From Bugula neritina (taxonomy: Eukaryota; Animalia; Bryozoa): a DNA stretch of 64,000 nucleotides. The stretch covers positions 16,151,292 through 16,215,291 of the forward strand of contig OZ037767.1 in the NCBI GenBank assembly GCA_964035545.1. Reading direction: 5' to 3'. Below the pieces are notes generated by a model. The model was not told the DNA's origin, did not search any database, and was given only the letters and a program-made list of their open reading frames with translations. The stretch's first letter is position 1. Each line of letters begins with the position of its first letter. A program made the position numbers and the translations under genes. This document shows positions 373-11,354 of this stretch, piece by piece.

Positions 373-3300
373 TGTGGTTTTATGTATACAGAAGAGACAG
401 TAGCATTCCATGACTTGGCATCTTTGAGTGATTTGTCTTGTGAGTTACGAGAAAGTCTGACTGGTGGAATCGAGACTCTGTCTGAGAAAGTTGCAGAGTT
501 GAATGACATCTCAAAGGATGCTTGGAAAGAACTGAGTAAAATAGAAGATGAAGTGAAGAAGATGGTTGCCAGAGTAAACGCTGTAGCTGATGCTCAGGTA
601 TGCTGACATATGGTGATGTCATCTAATGTATTTCTGTTTGTCTGAAATTAGGTTTTGCATTTGGTCTTTCAGTTGTAATCAGAAATGAATTTCATTTGTC
701 ATTCAAATTAACTGGCCATTAAAGCATTATCATTCTGTGTGCAGGTAGCAGTAGTAATTCATCACATGTAAGCCTAGGGCTACACGGTGCGTATTTTCGC
801 ATGCGAAAGTTGAAATCACAAGTAGCAAAGGTGTCCACTGTACGCGTTGAGAAAACATTCGCACTTGTCGCTCAGCATTCTCAACGCAAGTGCGAATCGT
901 CTCTGTCGTCGTCACTTAATTGGCTGGTAGTTATTCAGCAGCCCAATTTCTTTATTTTAGTGCTACATTCCAGTACATTGCGTTTTATTAAAAGCGAGTG
1001 CGATTTAAAAATGAAAGCTTCATTTATCACGCACCACTGACGCTACAGTGGACACCTTTGCTACTTGTGATTTAATTTTCGCATGCGAAAATACGCACCG
1101 TGTGGCCCTAGGCTTACTCAGTGCAGAGGAACCTGCATGTCAATACAGATGACTCAATCATCCTTCTGCAACTGTCAATCAATCACTCAGAGAGAGGTTG
1201 GCTGTGTGAGTGATTGACAGGTGTCAGCAGGAGGAGACTAGTCACGTGATTTACTAGCCCTCTGCTGTGTATAATGAAGTGTCACATGACTGAGTCATTG
1301 TATTCTTAGTGGGTGGTTTGTCACTTTCATTTCAAGTGTAGAGGTTGTGAGGTTCAGAGGTGGTTATCCTGTGTTACTATTTATTAGATAGAAAAGATTA
1401 GAAAGAGAGCTACAAACCTGAGGCTAGAAATATATGGATATTTGAAGAGCTGCACACAGATAGTGGATAATTATAGAATAGAGCTGGCCTTGAGTAAGAC
1501 AATGGACAGACAGTCTCTGCTGGACACAGTACAACATGCAGTTGATAAGTTCAATGATGCAGGGATTGTGAGAGACTACAAAGAGATGAGTGGGAAGATG
1601 GAAAAGGCTACAGATCTTGGTGTAATAGAGAAGTGTGTACTTCCAGACAGCATCTTGGTACCAACATGTAGGTGGAGTCTATAAATAGTAACACCAACTA
1701 TAAATAACTTTCTGCTTGTAATCAGTTAAATTGCTTTCATTGAATATTTAAATAGGAGAATAAAGAGAAGCCTCTGATAATTCGAAAAGTTGATGGAATT
1801 TATTTATTAGAGAATTGAGTTTTGTTCTACTTTCACATTATGAGACATCTCTGCAGTGTTTCAGAGTTTATGATGTATGAGTGAGTTGCTAAAGTGTGTT
1901 ATGCTGACTACGTGCTGTAGGTATTACCAAAATATTCTCACTTAGACCTGTGCATTACGCAGCAACTTGTAGTAACTACAGACTGCTTGTATTTAAAATA
2001 TCTTTTCATTTCAAGTTTGAAAAGCTGTTCCCCACCTCCTCAGGTGATGAGATTCTCAAGTTATAGAATTGTTCTTTTGTTGTTGCAGACAGTGAAGACA
2101 GTCTGGGACTGAAGCTGCTGCAGCCACCATCTTTTCTACAGTTTGATGGACTTCCTGTACGTGGAACGTGTTACACAGTAAACATCTCAGCTGATGGACA
2201 TGTGTTGTGTCGGATACCAGTAGGTGTAGAAATAAGAAATAGAGACTCTCTGAATACTATAATCAGCTCGGTGAAGGACACCGACACTACAGAGTGGAGG
2301 GAGATAATCCAACCTGAAGGGGTGATGGTTGGCAGCTGGTATAACAAAAAGGAGAAAACAGCTGAAGTCTCACTTCTTGATCCGAACTCCTTCAAAAAGT
2401 CTCGCTCTGTCTACAAGCTGTCAGTAGATGTACCCTTTTACTGTAGAATTGCTCAGCACCACTCACTGCTCTATATTGTAGACAGGAGAGAGATTCAGCT
2501 GGTAGTCTGTAATCTAGTTGACAATAAAATACAGAACTTCCCACTTCCTGAGATAGATTACCCTGTACCTGTATGCATCCTCCCAGACTCAACTCTCCTC
2601 ATAGGAGACTTTGCTGAAGATGGTAAAGTGAGAAGGTATAAAGCGGAGAACACAACTCTCACTCTAATGTGGGAGTTCCCTCACATCTCATATCCATCTG
2701 GTATTTCCTTTGATCCAACATCTGAACTGATTCACATCTGTACATGGAGAGGACCTCTCCTCATCTTCTCACTTGAAGGTAAATACTGTGTTTATTATAG
2801 TAAGGTTAGTTATTTTATATATAATTATGCTGTAGTAAATAATATATTTTATTAATTAACAGTAAACAAATGCTACTCATAAGATATAATATCGTTAGTA
2901 TTTATCAAGTCAGTGATGTTACTTTTAGCTAAAAGTTATGTAATAAAGACTGTAACATGCTGATAGTAGATGTTACATTCTTCATCACATGACTTGTAGC
3001 TAATAATATTATTAGTGAATAATATTGTCTCCCTACAATAAGTTTATTTCCAGCTGCAGTAACATGCAGGATGTAAGCACAGGTAAAAGTGTATATTATA
3101 CTGTATAGGTTTAAGGTGTACTCTGTGTAGTGTGCAGTGAGCTCTTAGTAAACTCTCTATGTGATAATGGTGGAGTAGCTGCAGTAGTAGTTAGAAATAG
3201 ACTTGCATGTGAGTGTGTTCTTGCTAAAGACCGCAGGCTAAGTTTGTGGGTCAAGGTCAATACATTAGTATAATGAGACACTATTTTCTGCTCTGTTTGA

Positions 3301-6300
3301 ATATTTACTCCATGCATATAACCTGCTTAGCTCTATCTTTAGAGGAAGTCTGTCTGTTTCTCTTAAAGAATTCCTGACACACTTTACTTATATAGCATGA
3401 AAATATTCATCTATGTCTTAGCTATCATTTTAATACTCTTTTGGGGTTTCAGGTCTAAACAATTTTGTTTTATAACAGTTTTAGTGCATGCATGTCCAAA
3501 AAACTTCGAGAATTGTTTTCGCCCTTCTGTGACGTATTACACCGCAGTTGCGAGAAATAGATGGAAACGCCGCCTGTAAGACATTCGGAAAATAAGTATA
3601 GGCTATATTTTCCGTTGCATGTAACCTTAGTTTTAGCATTTTTAATTTATCGGACGTCTGTCTAGCCCCCAATTAGTGTTTTTTTGTGGAATTTAGGTTT
3701 TATTTCATAAACAAATTTCGCGGCAATAAAATATACATAGCTACCAACTTACCGTGTCCGAGTCTGTGCAGTGTAATTGTGATAAAGATAAACCTAATAC
3801 AGAAATAACATAAATACGATATCAATATGAACATATCTGGCTCTGACGAAGAATACTTAGAGCACAGTGAGAATCGCAATGAGTATGACTATGACAATCA
3901 CACTCACGCTGTCACTGAGATTTCTGAAGTAATGGGCTATCAGTTTGAGCCGTTTACGTATCAAGATGAAAATGGAGATGATAGTCATGACAAGGATTTT
4001 ACTGTTACTGATGAGCAACAGGTGATAATATTTATAATTTTACAGTATCAGTACGATTTAATTTTATAAACTATAGTGTTACTAATACCGTAATACTTAT
4101 ACTAATACTAATAGTAATACTTTAACTTTAAGTTATAAGTATAAGCTAGTATAACTATAAGTTATAAATTATTATAATTATAATATTTCATTTTCATTTT
4201 GTAATTGTAAATCCAATGCTCAATGCCAATGCTCGTATTGATCCTGGCTTAATTAGTTAATATAGCTGAGTTTTGTGCTACTAAAGCTTTAGAGCAAGCA
4301 TGATATCAAATTACAAGCTAAATATTTGATGATTGCTATCGGTTTATATAATATTATTAATAATAAAGTGATAATCATTAAATTTAATGATTACAAATTC
4401 CAGTCAAGTAATTAAATATTTGATCAATACTAATTTTGTTATTACTACTACCAATACAGGTATTAGTATTAATTATTTGTAGTTAGATTTACCTGATAAT
4501 TTAAGTCAAGGGAAAGACTGTATTTTTATAAATGCATAATAATGATAATTATTATTCACTTTTATTGTAATTGTGGTTATACCGATCCTTAACAAAATAA
4601 GTTAATCACATACATAATCATGTCAAACTTGCATTCACGATGATAGCATTTAGTATTTTATTTCTAAGCCCCCTATTTCTCTGAATTTCTGCTTTTATAG
4701 TATAACATATAGTACTAACAACAATAAAATGTTTTAAAATTTCTGAAAATTAGTTTATTTCATAGCAAAAATTATGAGTTTGTTTTAATATAAAAAATCT
4801 AATTAATTTTCAACTATAAATATAAAAATAGTTTGAACAGTAATGCAAACTTGGAATATTTTAAAACCCATGATTTTAAAGTATTTTCAAACTTCAGCCT
4901 CATTGGACTCAATTTTCAATACAAAGAAAAATACAGGAAACAAATTTAGACACAGTAATTCATGGACTTAATGTGGATGATACTGGTAATAACGTTTTTA
5001 GAAAAGCTTGTTTGTTTTGTAGAAAAATATAAGGCCAGCCACGGAGTGGTGCACTTGCCACCGCTGCCAAAATCAGCCTACAGTGGAACAGTCTGTTTGT
5101 TGCCGTGATCATGCTGCAAACCTTCGATTAGATAGCAGCATGGAATGTATAACACAGCACCCGGGAGTACAGCAATTGACGCAACCAGCTGTATTAGAAG
5201 TTGCATACAGCGGCTACCTGAGATATCATGGTTAGTCAATTGCTACTGTAGATCAGTAACTGTCATTGTTAGTTTTTCTAGATAGTCTTACTTGATTATT
5301 TAGCCAATCATTTATTTTGGTAGATGATTTGTTTGATGAGAAGGCCCATTCTCTCAACACTAAAAAAAGGTTCTGCAGCTACCGGTTTTTGGTGTTCTGG
5401 CTGTTTCCAGATATTAAAAAAGGTGAGAGACGCCCTCTACCAGCTTGCTTATATGATTGGGTGCAAGCTACATTCCTCCCAACTGGTGATGAGGAAGAAT
5501 TTGCTGAATGGATGTTCAGCAAATTCGTGTACAATGAAGATTTATGAACATTAACACTCTGGTGATTTTTAGTAGCAGTCAGTTGCTACTGCCTCTTGTA
5601 GTGTGTACAGCTTACTATGAGAATAAACCTCATTATTTGCAATCTCCCTGACCTTTGAAATTAATTTACCGTTGAGTTTGAGTTGCAATAATGGTGAATA
5701 TACTTCAATATGGTGACTATTTTTGCGCTGAACTTTTCAAGTGACTCTAAGATCATATTCTACAATGCTTGAATTTTGATTCAACAAATAGAATTTACTT
5801 CACTACTTAGTTATGTAGAGCAATCAGGTATTGCAATATTCCTAGTACACTAGAATATCTAATGCAATGTAATATAATATAATATAACAATATTGTTTTT
5901 ATGAAACTTTGTGACATAGTATAACTTTTTACATATTTTTACCAATATATTGTTTTATTTATTGCTATTTATTGTTTTCACATTGCTATTTATGGCTCTA
6001 ATAAAGTACCAACAAAACCAAACATGCAGCTGCTCTACAGTGAAAACGAATATTTACATTTCAATGGAAACTGAGACTACAAGTAGATATATTGTCCAAA
6101 TTTATTTTTGACACACCTTGAGGTGGAAAATTAAAAATAGTATTTCCATTACACAAAAATATTTGTTTTTTTTTTGTTGCATTAGAACATGCATTTTAAA
6201 TAAAAATAAATATGGAGAAAAGCTATGAATTCAGTTTTTGAGCTAAGTGAACAATACTATTTCGCCATATTTCTATATACCAGCATTGAACAGCTTTGCT

Positions 6301-8390
6301 TCTAATCTTTTTCTGCATCCTTTTAGGTGTTTGTACATATTTATTGTGTCCTATTCCTTTCTGTAGGCCCTTCTTTTCTGGCTTAAGATTGAGAGCTGGT
6401 TTTTTAGTTTGACTTGGCAAAGGTCTAAAATATTATTATATATGAAGGTAAATGGAAAAGTATTATTGAAACAGCTGCAGAAAATCTCAATTGCTGTCTA
6501 TATCATATTTCAATTTTATTGCTCAAGATCGCATTTTCAATATTATAATCCTTACAGAAAACCAGGGTCTGATCTTTTTAACCAGCGAGCTTCTTTAGGT
6601 GTGATAGTGGCCGCCTGCTGACTTTGTTTCCGAGGAGTTAATGGAGTGCATCCAGTTGCACCCTCAGTTTCCACTAAATGAATAGTTGGGACTGCTGTTT
6701 TCTCTAAATGCAATCTAAAGAGTAAATCAAAGACAATGAATTTTTATTCTTTCAATAAGCTAAGTGAACAATATTTACCATTAATTTTTACTGGTATTGA
6801 TGATGGGCACCATTACCAGTATCATACTCATAGCATGAGTATCAGTGCGTATGAATCATAATATTAATGGTATGTATCCAAGTGACTATGACACATTCTG
6901 ATAATCATAAGTCTTTCATATTATCGCCATTATAAATGAATTTCCTTACAATAATGGTTATCGTGTAAATCATAAATGCAAACTTGTACTTGCAAGTTTA
7001 TGTCATAGTCACATGAAATTGAATCAACACGGTCATGACAATCCTATTGACTTATACCAACTTGTAGTAATACTTAATAGTTATAGCTATACTTATTGTT
7101 GAAAATCAACATTAAAAAAACTATCATTATCGTCTAATTTTATCACAATCACTAAGTCAGTATCACTATGAGTTTGAGTGAGTTATTCACTTACATGTTA
7201 ATGAGTTTTGCTTTATACCTGCCCATATTTGTAAATTGTTCATCACCAAAATGCTGAAAACACAAACGAGAGTTGTTATCAGGCAGAAAGTTTTTTCTTT
7301 TCGTATTGACAAACTTGGTCCATTTTTCACCACACACACTCACAGTATCAGCAGGCCATTTAAACATGGGTTTTTCCTTGTACGAACACATTGCAGCTTC
7401 ACACACTCTTCTTTTGCATTTGCCTTTAGAACTTGAAGCCATTCGTGTAGTCATGTCGACAGTAAGTGCAAGTGTAACTAGTAATATAGGTAATAAGTTT
7501 GTTCATTAGAGTCCAATGGCAATATGAATATGAAATCGAATTTATATAGATAGCGAGCGACTACTACTAGTAGTAGTGTAGTAGTAGTACTACTAGGCAC
7601 AGGTTATATTGGTAATATCCGGTTACGGTAATGATAATCTATTTGGAAGCGTAATAAGTTACATAATTGAATATGCAATTATTTGTAATGTTTTATAGAA
7701 AAGTTTGCCACTCGTTGGATTTAGCTAATTTCTTTTAACAATATCGTGTTATCACCGTACTTAGCCACCCGTTCTAATTACATCGTGAGGGTGAGGCTAT
7801 TTCATTTTTCCGATGTTCAAAATTTCTAACGGAAGTAACTTTAGCTTCTAATATCAATAATAAAATGGTATCATTTGTTTTTTTCATTGAGCATTAGTTG
7901 TACTCTGTGTTTTAAAATTTATGTCAGTATAGTGATTTATCTGTGTGTTGCAGTGGCTAAAAATAACACGCTGCGAAAGTATGCAATTATTACTATTAGT
8001 TATATAGTAACTAGGACTCGAAGCAGACCGGAAACCGGTGTAATACGTGTGCACTGAGAGCTTAGAAATCCGAAAGTTTTTTGGACATGCATGCACTAAA
8101 GTTGTTATAAAATGAAATAGTATAGCCATCCACCCTTAAAGGGATGCTTAATTGATAGCTAAGATATAGATGAATATTTTCATGCTATATAAGTAAAGTG
8201 TGTCAGGGATTCTTTAATACACACCAACTGATACAATATGATGCTATTATTTACAGGTCAACTGGTGCTTACAGTTCCCAGAGAAAGTCTTGGTGTGAGT
8301 GGCTGGGTGCTGGACATTGCTGTGTATAACAGAGACACAGTGTTTCTAGCAAGTGGAGACGGACTGAGGAGATGCACAATAAAATACTAA
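373..8390 (+). CDS. TRIM-family protein, copy 1 (3' part: coiled-coil and NHL-like beta-propeller); 5' exons lie upstream of the window
   Basis: Phase-consistent GT-AG exons 373-597, 1388-1667, 2089-2778, 8257-8390 (TAA). Heptad-rich helical segment followed by propeller-like repeats (PVCILPDSTLLIGD, PSGISFDPTSELIHIC, VLDIAVYNRDTVFLAS). The paralog at 22.7-24.7 kb shares the last exon and has RING+B-box exons. AATAAA at 8683. First acceptor position is uncertain. Confidence 0.8.
771..1114. mobile_element. MITE (non-autonomous DNA transposon) in a TRIM intron
   Basis: About 70-bp terminal inverted repeats AGCCTAGGGCTACACGGTGCGTATTTTCGCATGCGAAA...; TA flanks both ends (769-770, 1115-1116). Superfamily unresolved. 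Confidence 0.85.
3827..5547 (+). CDS. KolX-like / P2X7 cytoplasmic ballast (Zn-coordinating Cys) domain protein, 208 aa, 3 exons
   Basis: Exons 3827-4021, 5023-5230, 5324-5547 splice in frame (627 nt). Motifs YQFEP, WCTCHRCQNQPT..SVCC, CITQHP, KRFCSYRFLVFW..GERRPLPAC. Confidence 0.82.
6223..7454 (-). CDS. THAP-domain protein, 206 aa, 3 exons (transposase N-terminus without DDE domain)
   Basis: Exons 7454-7195, 6714-6556, 6424-6223 splice in frame (621 nt). C-x4-C...FKWP...W...LCFQHF...AVPTI THAP signature; basic C-terminus. Confidence 0.82.
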
Positions 8391-10218: not shown

Positions 10219-10392
10219 CGAGACAGTACCTGGTAAGTCCAGGGTCTCTGTGTCTTCATCTCGATGCACATGAACCCTTCGGTCTCGTTCCTCGAATAAA
10301 CTTAGACATGTCAATACCTCTGCCAAAGTCTATCAGCTTTATGCTGGATGAGGAGAACGGCTTTTCGGGAAAAACTTCGGGACTACACGGGG

Positions 10393-10828
10393 TAGAGTAT
10401 ACAGTGTAGAGTATACAGAGTAGAGTATACAGAGTAGAGTATACAGTGTATACAGAGTGTATACAGTGTGTATACAGTGTGTACAGAGTGTACAGAGTGT
10501 ACAGAGTGTACAGAGTGTACAGAGTGTACAGAGTGTACAGAGTGTACAGAGTGTACAGAGTGTACAGAGTGTACAGAGTGTACAGAGTGTACAGAGTGTA
10601 CAGAGTGTACAGAGTGTACAGAGTGTACAGAGTGTACAGAGTGTACAGAGTGTACAGAGTGTACAGAGTGTACAGAGTGTACAGAGTGTACAGAGTGTAC
10701 AGAGTAGAGTATACAGAGTAGAGTATACAGAGTATACAGAGTAGAGTATACAGAGTAGAGTATACAGAGTAGAGTATACAGAGTAGAGTATACAGAGTAG
10801 AGTATACAGAGTAGAGTATACAGAGTAT
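10393..10828. repeat. Compound minisatellite: 14-bp TAGAGTATACAGAG flanking a 9-bp GTGTACAGA core
   Basis: Tandem units; source of the spurious repetitive ORFs. Confidence 0.95.
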
Positions 10829-11354
10829 AACGACACTTACAACCCACAGAAGAGGATGTTGTCTGGCTTGATGTCTCCATGAATTATCTTACAGCGATGC
10901 ATGACCTCTACAGCATGCAGTAGCTCGATGGTGACGTACATGACTAACGACTCCGGCATCTGTAAACAGTAGACGTAGACATGACTGAGCAGTGAGCAAA
11001 GTACAGTGCAACTCATGAACTGAACAGCCAATGAGAATACAGACACACGCCAAACAGCCAATAAGAACGCAGCTTACTTTACAAGAGTTGGCCTTCATGC
11101 CGTTGACGAGGTTGAGAAGAGAGCCGAGGGGCACCAGTTCGTTGACCATGAGGGATCCGTCGGAGAAGAAGACGGAGTGGGTGATGTCCATCAGCTTGCT
11201 GCCGATATCTCTCTCGATGTCTTCGTCCATGTAGAATACTCGCTGCCGCAACTCCTTGCAGATGTACAGCTCCCACGGGCAGCTCGGCTTCTGTGCCTTC
11301 ACACACACATCGTCACTCTCGGAGTAAGCCTGGAGACTTTACCTGCATAGAGAG

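Follow-up and report, generated by a model that had tools for sequence, protein, structure and literature searches.

The locus described here lies in a 64,000-nucleotide stretch of the Bugula neritina genome (the window) and raises the question of whether a transposon carrying two intact-looking spliced genes and no transposase core is a module maintained by selection or a young internal-deletion product on its way to decay. The element spans positions 3367 to 8213 (4,847 bp), and direct reading places a TTAA target-site duplication on either side of it (3363 to 3366 and 8214 to 8217). Its left terminal inverted repeat (3367 to 3426, plus strand) begins 5'-AG and, on comparison of both ends, matches the reverse complement of the right repeat (8154 to 8213, minus strand, ending CT-3') at 58 of 60 nucleotides, which bears out the TTAA-bounded insertion with near-identical terminal repeats proposed in the first-pass annotation. 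A second, well-matched pair of inverted blocks (3471 to 3506 on the plus strand and 8074 to 8109 on the minus strand) sits ~105 to 140 nucleotides inside either end, and the left block, with its core GCATGCATG, is a candidate transposase-binding site. Across the family copies whose ends were read, the termini are 5'-AGAATT...GATTCT-3'; TTAA plus the first 16 nucleotides occurs ~660 times in the genome at three or fewer mismatches, versus 33 times for a reversed control. Pfam searches of the flanking host open reading frames found no domain.

Between these ends lie two convergent three-exon genes, both predicted to splice in frame. On the plus strand, the KolX gene (3827 to 4021, 5023 to 5230, and 5324 to 5547, stop codon included) has GT donors, AG acceptors, and phases 0 and 1, and yields a stop-free frame of 208 amino acids. 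Its first exon (65 codons) is acidic and without a family match, and its GTGATA donor is kept in 21 of 22 copies. The second exon carries a cysteine-rich core of the form WCxCxxC...CC...C that resembles the P2RX7_C domain, and the third, likewise P2RX7_C-like, is collinear with it; together they hold eight cysteines, the WCxCxxC and CC motifs among them. In the P2X7 ballast (PF20478), seven conserved cysteines bind two zinc ions, and a guanine-nucleotide site is present as well. In domain searches run on single exons, exon 2 matched profile positions 78 to 115 of PF20478 (E = 0.005, 17.1 bits) and exon 3 positions 133 to 181 (E = 0.054, 13.8 bits), both below the gathering score of 23.5. P2RX7_C was also found in 26 of the 30 named Atlas clusters nearest to exon 2 (top score, 0.92); a phmmer search of this exon against PDB sequences returned nothing at E <= 10.

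On the minus strand, predicted splicing would join exons at 7454 to 7219, 6714 to 6556, and 6424 to 6223 into an in-frame, stop-free sequence of 198 amino acids. The earlier description of two convergent, in-frame three-exon genes thus stands, except that this product had been given as 206 residues long, and no alternative AG/GT boundaries yielding that length were found. THAP domains (PF05485) combine a C-X2-4-C-X35-53-C-X2-H zinc finger with a C-terminal AVPTIF-like motif; here, the finger reads C18-X4-C23-X41-C65-X2-H68 in exon 1, and direct reading of exon 2, which contains the end of the domain plus a linker, shows AVPTIH. Pfam scored exon 1 at 20.7 bits (E = 7e-4; cutoff, 23.9). The same exon contains an AC-rich slippage hotspot near 7336 to 7345, where indels recur among copies. 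Exon 3 is basic and NLS-like and reads into a stop 676 bp from that of KolX, in agreement with the ~680 bp reported before. Since both frames have Pfam matches (P2RX7_C and THAP) and since 21 to 22 of the 22 copies share their exon layout and splice sites, we do not regard them as chance open reading frames. As had been noted from the sequence, no DDE domain is present; Pfam found none in any exon of the window element. The stop that ends the THAP frame also occurs in a longer copy of the element (see below), where the DNA retained next lies ~410 bp downstream, and must therefore, we infer, have been intronic in the parent gene. The apparent three-exon THAP gene would accordingly represent the first three exons of a transposase gene, reading into a former intronic stop, with the last ~20 C-terminal residues probably being intron read-through.

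At least 22 young copies of this family were found in the genome, every one at its own TTAA site and with unrelated flanks; TTAA was seen at every copy end that was read, the reading in six type-B copies stopping short of the right end. Mapped against the longer copy (7,419 bp, at C8:9090471-9097889), eight copies (type A, the type of the window element) lack positions 2475 to 5029 (2,555 bp), eight others (type B) lack positions 2424 to 5269, and a further five single copies each have other breakpoints, which amounts to six or seven independent central deletions. The type-A junction lies at 5809 to 5815 of the window, where two arms, corresponding to long-copy positions 1 to 2474 and 5030 to 7419 and 96 to 98% identical to them, meet at a 7-nucleotide imperfect microhomology (AGTTATG). 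This identical junction occurs in eight copies, each at a different TTAA site, so the lineage is mobile and multicopy, as the first-pass annotation had held. Its further contention that the element is something other than a simple deletion derivative is not supported by the map, on which a single internal deletion separates the window element from its longer relative. The loss at the junction comprises the 3' end of the transposase gene along with the rest of its core exons. Across the family, junction microhomologies measure 1 to 7 nucleotides and the arms kept measure 2167 to 2614 and 2150 to 2799 bp, and both genes, or nearly so, are present in types A and B and in all five single-copy variants. 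Short derivatives without both genes exist as well (e.g., C1:3630185-3631336).

The long copy is the only member of the family with core exons. The region deleted in types A and B holds, as read there, core exons with LTTDRH (the second D) and DTWH; this core has a DxxH signature and matches THAP-fused transposases, together with weak Mutator/MULE-like matches, and one of its relatives, P0129, carries an N-terminal THAP domain. Pfam returned nothing for most of these exons, save a weak MULE match. Comparison with guide proteins and a related element on C6 showed that the exon or exons with the first Asp are missing. Bridging the gap are 101 bp that repeat, perfectly and in inverted orientation, host DNA starting 3 nucleotides past the long copy's own TTAA. 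In addition, its KolX is frameshifted. Given the missing first-Asp exon and this frameshift, we rejected the long copy as an autonomous partner. No autonomous source of the same subfamily was found, even though one pair of type-B copies shows no difference across 3,402 aligned sites, which speaks somewhat against the explanation favored below. The related family, with elements at C6:5.89 Mb and C5:13.49 Mb, might be the source of the transposase.

Kolobok transposons are characterized by TTAA duplications and 5'-RR...YY-3' termini, the latter separating them from piggyBac (PMC9587614). The window element has both the duplication and AG...CT termini; the Kolobok DDD/E core with its C/DxxH signature is absent from this copy, so the assignment is by descent, via the long copy. 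Within Kolobok, the Kol0 lineage pairs a transposase with KolX, published as a P2X7 ballast fold (Kojima & Bao 2022, PMC9587614). A KolX with a ballast-like cysteine-rich core (subthreshold for PF20478), convergent with a transposase remnant, is what the window element contains, and judged by this architecture, it belongs to Kol0; the earlier reading of a Kolobok-type element with a P2X7-ballast-like gene is therefore upheld, with the pairing and the ballast link being already in print (PMC9587614). Kol0 has been listed from vertebrates, annelids, cnidarians, and sponges, and Bryozoa have been listed with KolobokP only (PMC9587614); the present family appears to be undescribed so far. Because piggyBac elements duplicate TTAA too, and some of their families have a KolX-like gene, a piggyBac-type origin was also weighed. 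The AG...CT termini are unlike those of piggyBac (PMC9587614), the window KolX keeps the cysteine-rich core that is mostly missing from piggyBac KolX-like proteins, the long-copy core has the signature and the matches given above, and a piggyBac domain was found in no exon of either the window element or the long copy, making this origin extremely improbable.

Taken together, we consider it very likely that the window element is a non-autonomous, internally deleted two-gene Kolobok (Kol0) copy that was mobilized in trans and whose frames are decaying neutrally. In its parent, a THAP-DDE transposase gene and, on the opposite strand, KolX would have run toward each other; one central deletion of 2.55 kb would have stripped the transposase gene of its 3' end and its entire set of core exons, leaving KolX and the first three transposase exons, now reading into a stop. 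With both ends kept, the deleted element could then be mobilized in trans, as it was at least eight times. The deletion most likely originated from interrupted gap repair after excision, in which synthesis from both ends would have been aborted and the ends would then have been joined at microhomology. The 101-bp filler scar in the long copy points to such a source, and aborted gap repair would also explain why six or seven deletions all kept 2.15 to 2.8 kb per arm and, hence, both terminal genes. Selection for keeping both genes would also fit the tight grouping of the breakpoints, which lie just beyond them.

Such selection is what one would expect if the 4.85-kb form were a maintained module, consisting of a THAP-only end-binding repressor or recruiter and a KolX helper. 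That both genes are kept, or nearly so, in the amplified types A and B (eight copies each) and in the five singles is in line with this proposal, and, in a breakpoint sample collected with the window element as the query, random placement would have left the two genes untouched in each of the six primary events with a probability of ~6e-6, given the deletion lengths. The KP repressor provides a precedent (PMC7776569). Private substitutions amount to 2 to 4 per kb in exons as well as in introns. Leaving out codons split across exons, terminal branches showed 30 nonsynonymous and 9 synonymous changes in KolX, versus 30.3 and 10.2 expected (omega, ~1.1), and 16 and 12 in the THAP exons, versus 27.6 and 9.1 expected (omega, ~0.44). 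The latter deficit of nonsynonymous changes, which would favor maintenance, is marginal (P = 0.045, uncorrected over four tests), and three of the synonymous changes fall in one already frame-broken copy, without which P is ~0.1 by a hand estimate. On internal branches, KolX has 6 changes versus 17 expected, a shortfall that may stem from earlier selection on autonomous ancestors or from something else.

Indels and shared lesions weigh against maintenance of either gene. Indels are as common in exons (26/kb) as in noncoding DNA (24/kb), and in-frame (3n) indels make up 12 of 32 and 20 of 52, respectively (Fisher P = 1). An excess of in-frame 6-bp exon insertions was considered as a sign of selection and rejected, as noncoding DNA has an equal excess. 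The two frames are not retained together: both are open in 8 of 22 copies, versus 7.7 expected if independent, and among the eight type-A copies, this holds for the window copy only. KolX exon 3 is frameshifted in 7 of the 22. A 2-bp KolX deletion is common to three type-A copies at different sites, and broken copies therefore still transposed; shared frameshifts and stops have spread among copies by transposition, a zinc-ligand Cys>Arg change is common to two copies, and a conserved Trp>Arg change is common to three. For maintenance of the KP type, then, we found no robust purifying selection and saw that broken copies had propagated. Since the proteins of eukaryotic DNA transposons act in trans, the encoding element gains no private advantage. 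Together with the short derivatives devoid of both genes, these observations make the maintained module very improbable. Both frames of the window element have decayed neutrally since the deletion, and their intactness reflects youth, not function. The helper or repressor pair envisaged in the first-pass annotation is not supported by these data. That annotation had also named what would speak against it, a single copy recently deleted from a near-identical autonomous element with dN/dS near 1. The window element did indeed turn out to be recently deleted from a longer, near-identical one, and for KolX, the ratio is near 1, but the element is not single copy.

A repressive effect might also arise without selection, if the truncated THAP-plus-NLS protein of young copies competed for element ends and incidentally damped transposition. 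The retained frame does have a complete C2CH finger, along with the AVPTI motif and basic stretches resembling an NLS, it is still open in 13 of 22 copies, and KP again sets a precedent (PMC7776569). However, no dimerization region was identified in the THAP-only frame, its C terminus is probably the read-through mentioned above, and no sequence observation requires such an effect, which we regard as unlikely. It is more doubtful still that the deleted copies spread by virtue of keeping both genes, supplying a THAP-only, KP-like competitor and an intact KolX in trans. The beneficiary would in that case be a family in which KolX is broken in the sole copy that bears core exons, and the trace left would be the weak THAP signal (omega, ~0.44) and the clustered breakpoints.

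Cut-and-paste transposons normally end up as deletion derivatives that are mobilized in trans. Returning to the neutrally decaying deletion derivative, we attach little weight to it as a discovery, with the Kol0 architecture, KolX, and the P2X7-ballast link already published. Rather, this clean and well-resolved set of young central deletions, independent in origin and in one case with filler from the copy's own flank, illustrates how non-autonomous Kolobok elements would originate by interrupted gap repair, and it offers many near-intact KolX genes for studies of the role of KolX. When the genome is annotated, these KolX and THAP frames should be labeled as transposon derived, lest they be taken for "P2X7-like" or "THAP" genes of the host.

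Compared with known systems, the window element is closest in architecture to Kol0 (type element, Kolobok-1_XT; Kapitonov & Jurka; Kojima & Bao 2022), with which it shares the TTAA duplication, RR...YY termini, and a KolX with a cysteine-rich, ballast-like core. The THAP-fused DDD/E transposase of Kol0 is shared as well, being seen as remnants in the window copy and the long copy, but the window copy has no catalytic core whatever. The likeness in sequence to the vertebrate P2X7 ballast consists of the collinear, weak profile matches of KolX exons 2 and 3, each below the gathering score; KolX differs in being a stand-alone protein of 208 residues that lacks a channel and has an acidic exon at its N terminus. 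Internally deleted P elements, finally, encode KP, a 207-amino-acid THAP-containing repressor (PMC7776569), and share with the window element the central deletion of a THAP-DDE transposon, amplification in trans, and a THAP-only frame of ~200 amino acids. P elements lack the second gene, KolX, and whereas the repression by KP and its spread have been shown experimentally (PMC7776569), the THAP frame of the window element is known from its sequence and decays neutrally.

The element occupies window positions 3367-8213 (4,847 bp) between two copies of the target-site duplication TTAA (3363-3366 and 8214-8217), both read from the sequence, and its outermost 60 nt match as inverted repeats at 58 positions, in line with the TTAA-bounded insertion and near-identical termini described in the first-pass annotation. 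A second, well-paired inverted block is located ~105 to 140 nt inward of each end. On the plus strand, three predicted exons of the P2X7-ballast-like gene KolX (3827-4021, 5023-5230, and 5324-5547) are joined in frame at GT/AG sites to give 208 codons, the length first reported. The convergent THAP frame on the minus strand (7454-7219, 6714-6556, and 6424-6223) also joins in frame, but its length is 198 aa in the present model, and no other splice site yielding the originally proposed 206 aa was found in the window copy. The distance between the two stop codons is 676 bp (initially put at ~680 bp). As had been noted, a DDE domain was found in none of the exons by a Pfam scan, which was run exon by exon. 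In that scan, KolX exons 2 and 3 gave collinear matches to P2RX7_C (E = 0.005, profile positions 78 to 115, and E = 0.054, positions 133 to 181, respectively), both below the gathering score; 26 of the 30 nearest named Atlas clusters of KolX exon 2 were P2RX7_C (top score, 0.92). The match of THAP-frame exon 1 to THAP (E = 7e-4) was also below the gathering score when taken singly, while the THAP signature itself is legible (C18-X4-C23-X41-C65-X2-H68, with AVPTIH in exon 2). An AC-rich slippage hotspot in exon 1 (window 7336-7345), with repeated 2- to 16-bp indels among copies, accounts for a large part of the lost reading frames in that exon.

A sister copy (C8:9090471-9097889; 7,419 bp), referred to here as the long copy, contains 2,555 bp that are absent from the window copy. 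Contrary to the suggestion that the latter is something other than a simple deletion derivative, it equals the long copy minus positions 2475-5029, with a 7-nt imperfect microhomology at the junction (window 5809-5815). The extra DNA contains transposase exons with LTTDRH and a DTWH (DxxH) signature and gives a weak MULE match; in a large protein library, it has 893 relatives at E ≤ 0.001, among them proteins of 550 to 670 aa, one of which carries an N-terminal THAP domain. Since the stop codon ending the "THAP gene" is also found in the long copy, ~410 bp before the start of the deleted stretch, it would be intronic in the parent gene, and we infer from the sequence that the apparent three-exon gene represents the first three transposase exons, read into a former intron.

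The long copy is itself defective. Its KolX is frameshifted and, as established against guide proteins and a related element at C6:5.89 Mb, it lacks the stretch bearing the first catalytic Asp (GDGRCDSPGHSA in that relative). Exactly at the site of the missing exon, the gap is bridged by 101 bp (positions 4415-4515 of the long-copy sequence, L033) that are a perfect inverted copy (100% match) of host DNA beginning 3 nt past the element's own TTAA (L033:8398-8498; C8:9097897-9097997). The bridge represents filler copied by template switching, a repair scar, and shows that the lesion arose in situ at the C8 locus, recently and during repair. The extra DNA has no second full occurrence in the genome, the sole other piece being a fragment on C5 that has decayed to 84% identity, and the first-Asp exon is present at only four loci, all of a different family (~60% amino acid identity); the search for an autonomous partner thus revealed none of the same subfamily. 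A related Kol0 family (55 to 60% amino acid identity) is found in the whole genome assembly (G000) at G000:C6:5893681-5896875 and G000:C5:13491353-13494565. Reading frames are open in its KolX exons and in its transposase exons, the first-Asp exon among them, and its core exons look complete; we consider it a candidate source of active transposase.

As anticipated, the structure is multicopy: the 216-Mb genome contains at least 22 young copies, 8 of them of the window's own deletion type. Every copy whose ends were read has TTAA on both sides, AG...CT termini, and unrelated surrounding DNA, so each of them arrived by its own transposition rather than through segmental duplication. TTAA followed by the outermost 16 nt of the element occurs ~660 times in the genome (≤3 mismatches), versus 33 times for the reversed control, and many further elements therefore have the same ends, probably including MITEs. 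Inverted terminus pairs less than 100 bp apart (e.g., G000:C1:26734010-26734102) are among these occurrences, so a large MITE-like population has these ends. In the type-A copy at C5:11.70 Mb, KolX intron 1 is interrupted by a Gypsy-like LTR retroelement of 7.5 kb (L032:2029-9515, in the sequence containing that copy) with gag, protease, RT, RNase H, and integrase in long open frames; an older copy (C1:34.84 Mb) has a similar-sized insertion ~100 bp away, probably the same kind of retroelement. Six-base-pair insertions make up ~27% of short indels in all 22 copies, in exons and noncoding DNA alike (e.g., at window 4150 and at the L033 equivalents of window 3978 and 6893). The 19 listed insertions include 7 in which a hexamer is perfectly duplicated in tandem and 9 in which 5 nt are duplicated but the sixth base differs; the excess could be either a mutational signature or the footprint of something else.

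Type A, the window's type (8 copies), lacks long-copy positions 2475-5029, type B (8 copies) lacks positions 2424-5269, and in five single copies the missing positions differ in each. One of these five forms is derivable from type A via further deletion, leaving six or seven independent deletions. Counting substitutions only, type-A copies diverge by 1.2% on average and type-B copies by 0.4%. A pair of type-B copies from separate sites shows no difference across 3,402 aligned positions, implying very recent transposition. Junction microhomologies are 1 to 7 nt long, and all deletions preserve 2,167 to 2,614 bp of the arm on the KolX side and 2,150 to 2,799 bp of that on the THAP side. By our arithmetic, if deletions of the observed lengths were placed at random, the probability that all six primary events left both genes untouched would be ~6e-6, so the breakpoint clustering is real. 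As the origin of every central deletion we favor interrupted gap repair after excision, which is a well-established process in P and Ac/Ds elements: synthesis would run inward from both ends of the element and stop early, after which the ends would be joined at a microhomology, at times with filler. This model explains the survival of both terminal genes with no need for selection.

Selection to retain both genes, as a maintained helper or repressor pair, would also explain the clustering, but it is contradicted by the neutrality tests, by the fact that the products act in trans, and by the presence of short derivatives without both genes. Private substitutions, most likely postinsertion, amount to 2 to 4 per kb in each copy, whether in exons or in introns. 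With changes mapped by parsimony on a maximum likelihood tree and the element's own noncoding spectrum as the neutral expectation, terminal branches of KolX showed 30 nonsynonymous and 9 synonymous changes (30.3 and 10.2 expected; omega, ~1.1), and those of the THAP exons showed 16 and 12 (27.6 and 9.1 expected; omega, ~0.44). The latter deficit has a P value of 0.045, uncorrected across four tests, and 3 of the synonymous changes occur in one copy whose frame was already broken; minus that copy, P is ~0.1 (hand estimate). Indels are equally frequent in exons (26 per kb) and noncoding DNA (24 per kb), with similar in-frame shares (12/32 versus 20/52; Fisher P = 1). Lesions were passed on to further copies: three type-A copies share a 2-bp KolX deletion, two copies share a Cys-to-Arg change at a zinc ligand, and three share a Trp-to-Arg change at a conserved position. 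KolX is open in 13 of 22 copies, as is THAP, and both are open in 8 (7.7 expected under independence); within type A, this holds for the window copy only. Internal branches of KolX, which largely divide deletion types from different long ancestors, carry 6 changes against 17 expected, with synonymous changes lowered too; at most, this reflects some past selection on autonomous ancestors. Together, these data fit neutral decay of trans-mobilized copies. The THAP-only product may have an incidental KP-like effect, although nothing in the present data requires one.

Open frames on the same strand lie on either side of the element (window 2202-2855 and 8238-8390, both plus strand), neither with a Pfam match, and the element is probably inside an intron of a host gene. 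Farther along the window, a short unit repeats in tandem over a long stretch (10339-10880; translated as CTLCTL.../VHSVHS...), next to a kinase-like fragment (HRCKIIHGDIKPDNILF) on the minus strand (~10837-11308).

Kolobok elements generate TTAA duplications and, unlike piggyBac, have ends of the form 5'-RR and YY-3'; elements of the original Kol0 group code for a DDD/E transposase and a second protein, KolX, which matches the cytoplasmic ballast of P2X7, with its two zinc ions and seven conserved Cys residues, and is probably the origin of that ballast (Kojima & Bao 2022, PMC9587614). Both the architecture and the ballast link flagged in the first-pass annotation stand in that paper and were therefore already known. 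By its termini, target site, THAP, KolX, and descent from a core-bearing copy, the window element belongs to Kol0 Kolobok, the elements of which are the closest known systems, while its closest functional analogue is found among P elements with internal deletions, for example KP (PMC7776569).
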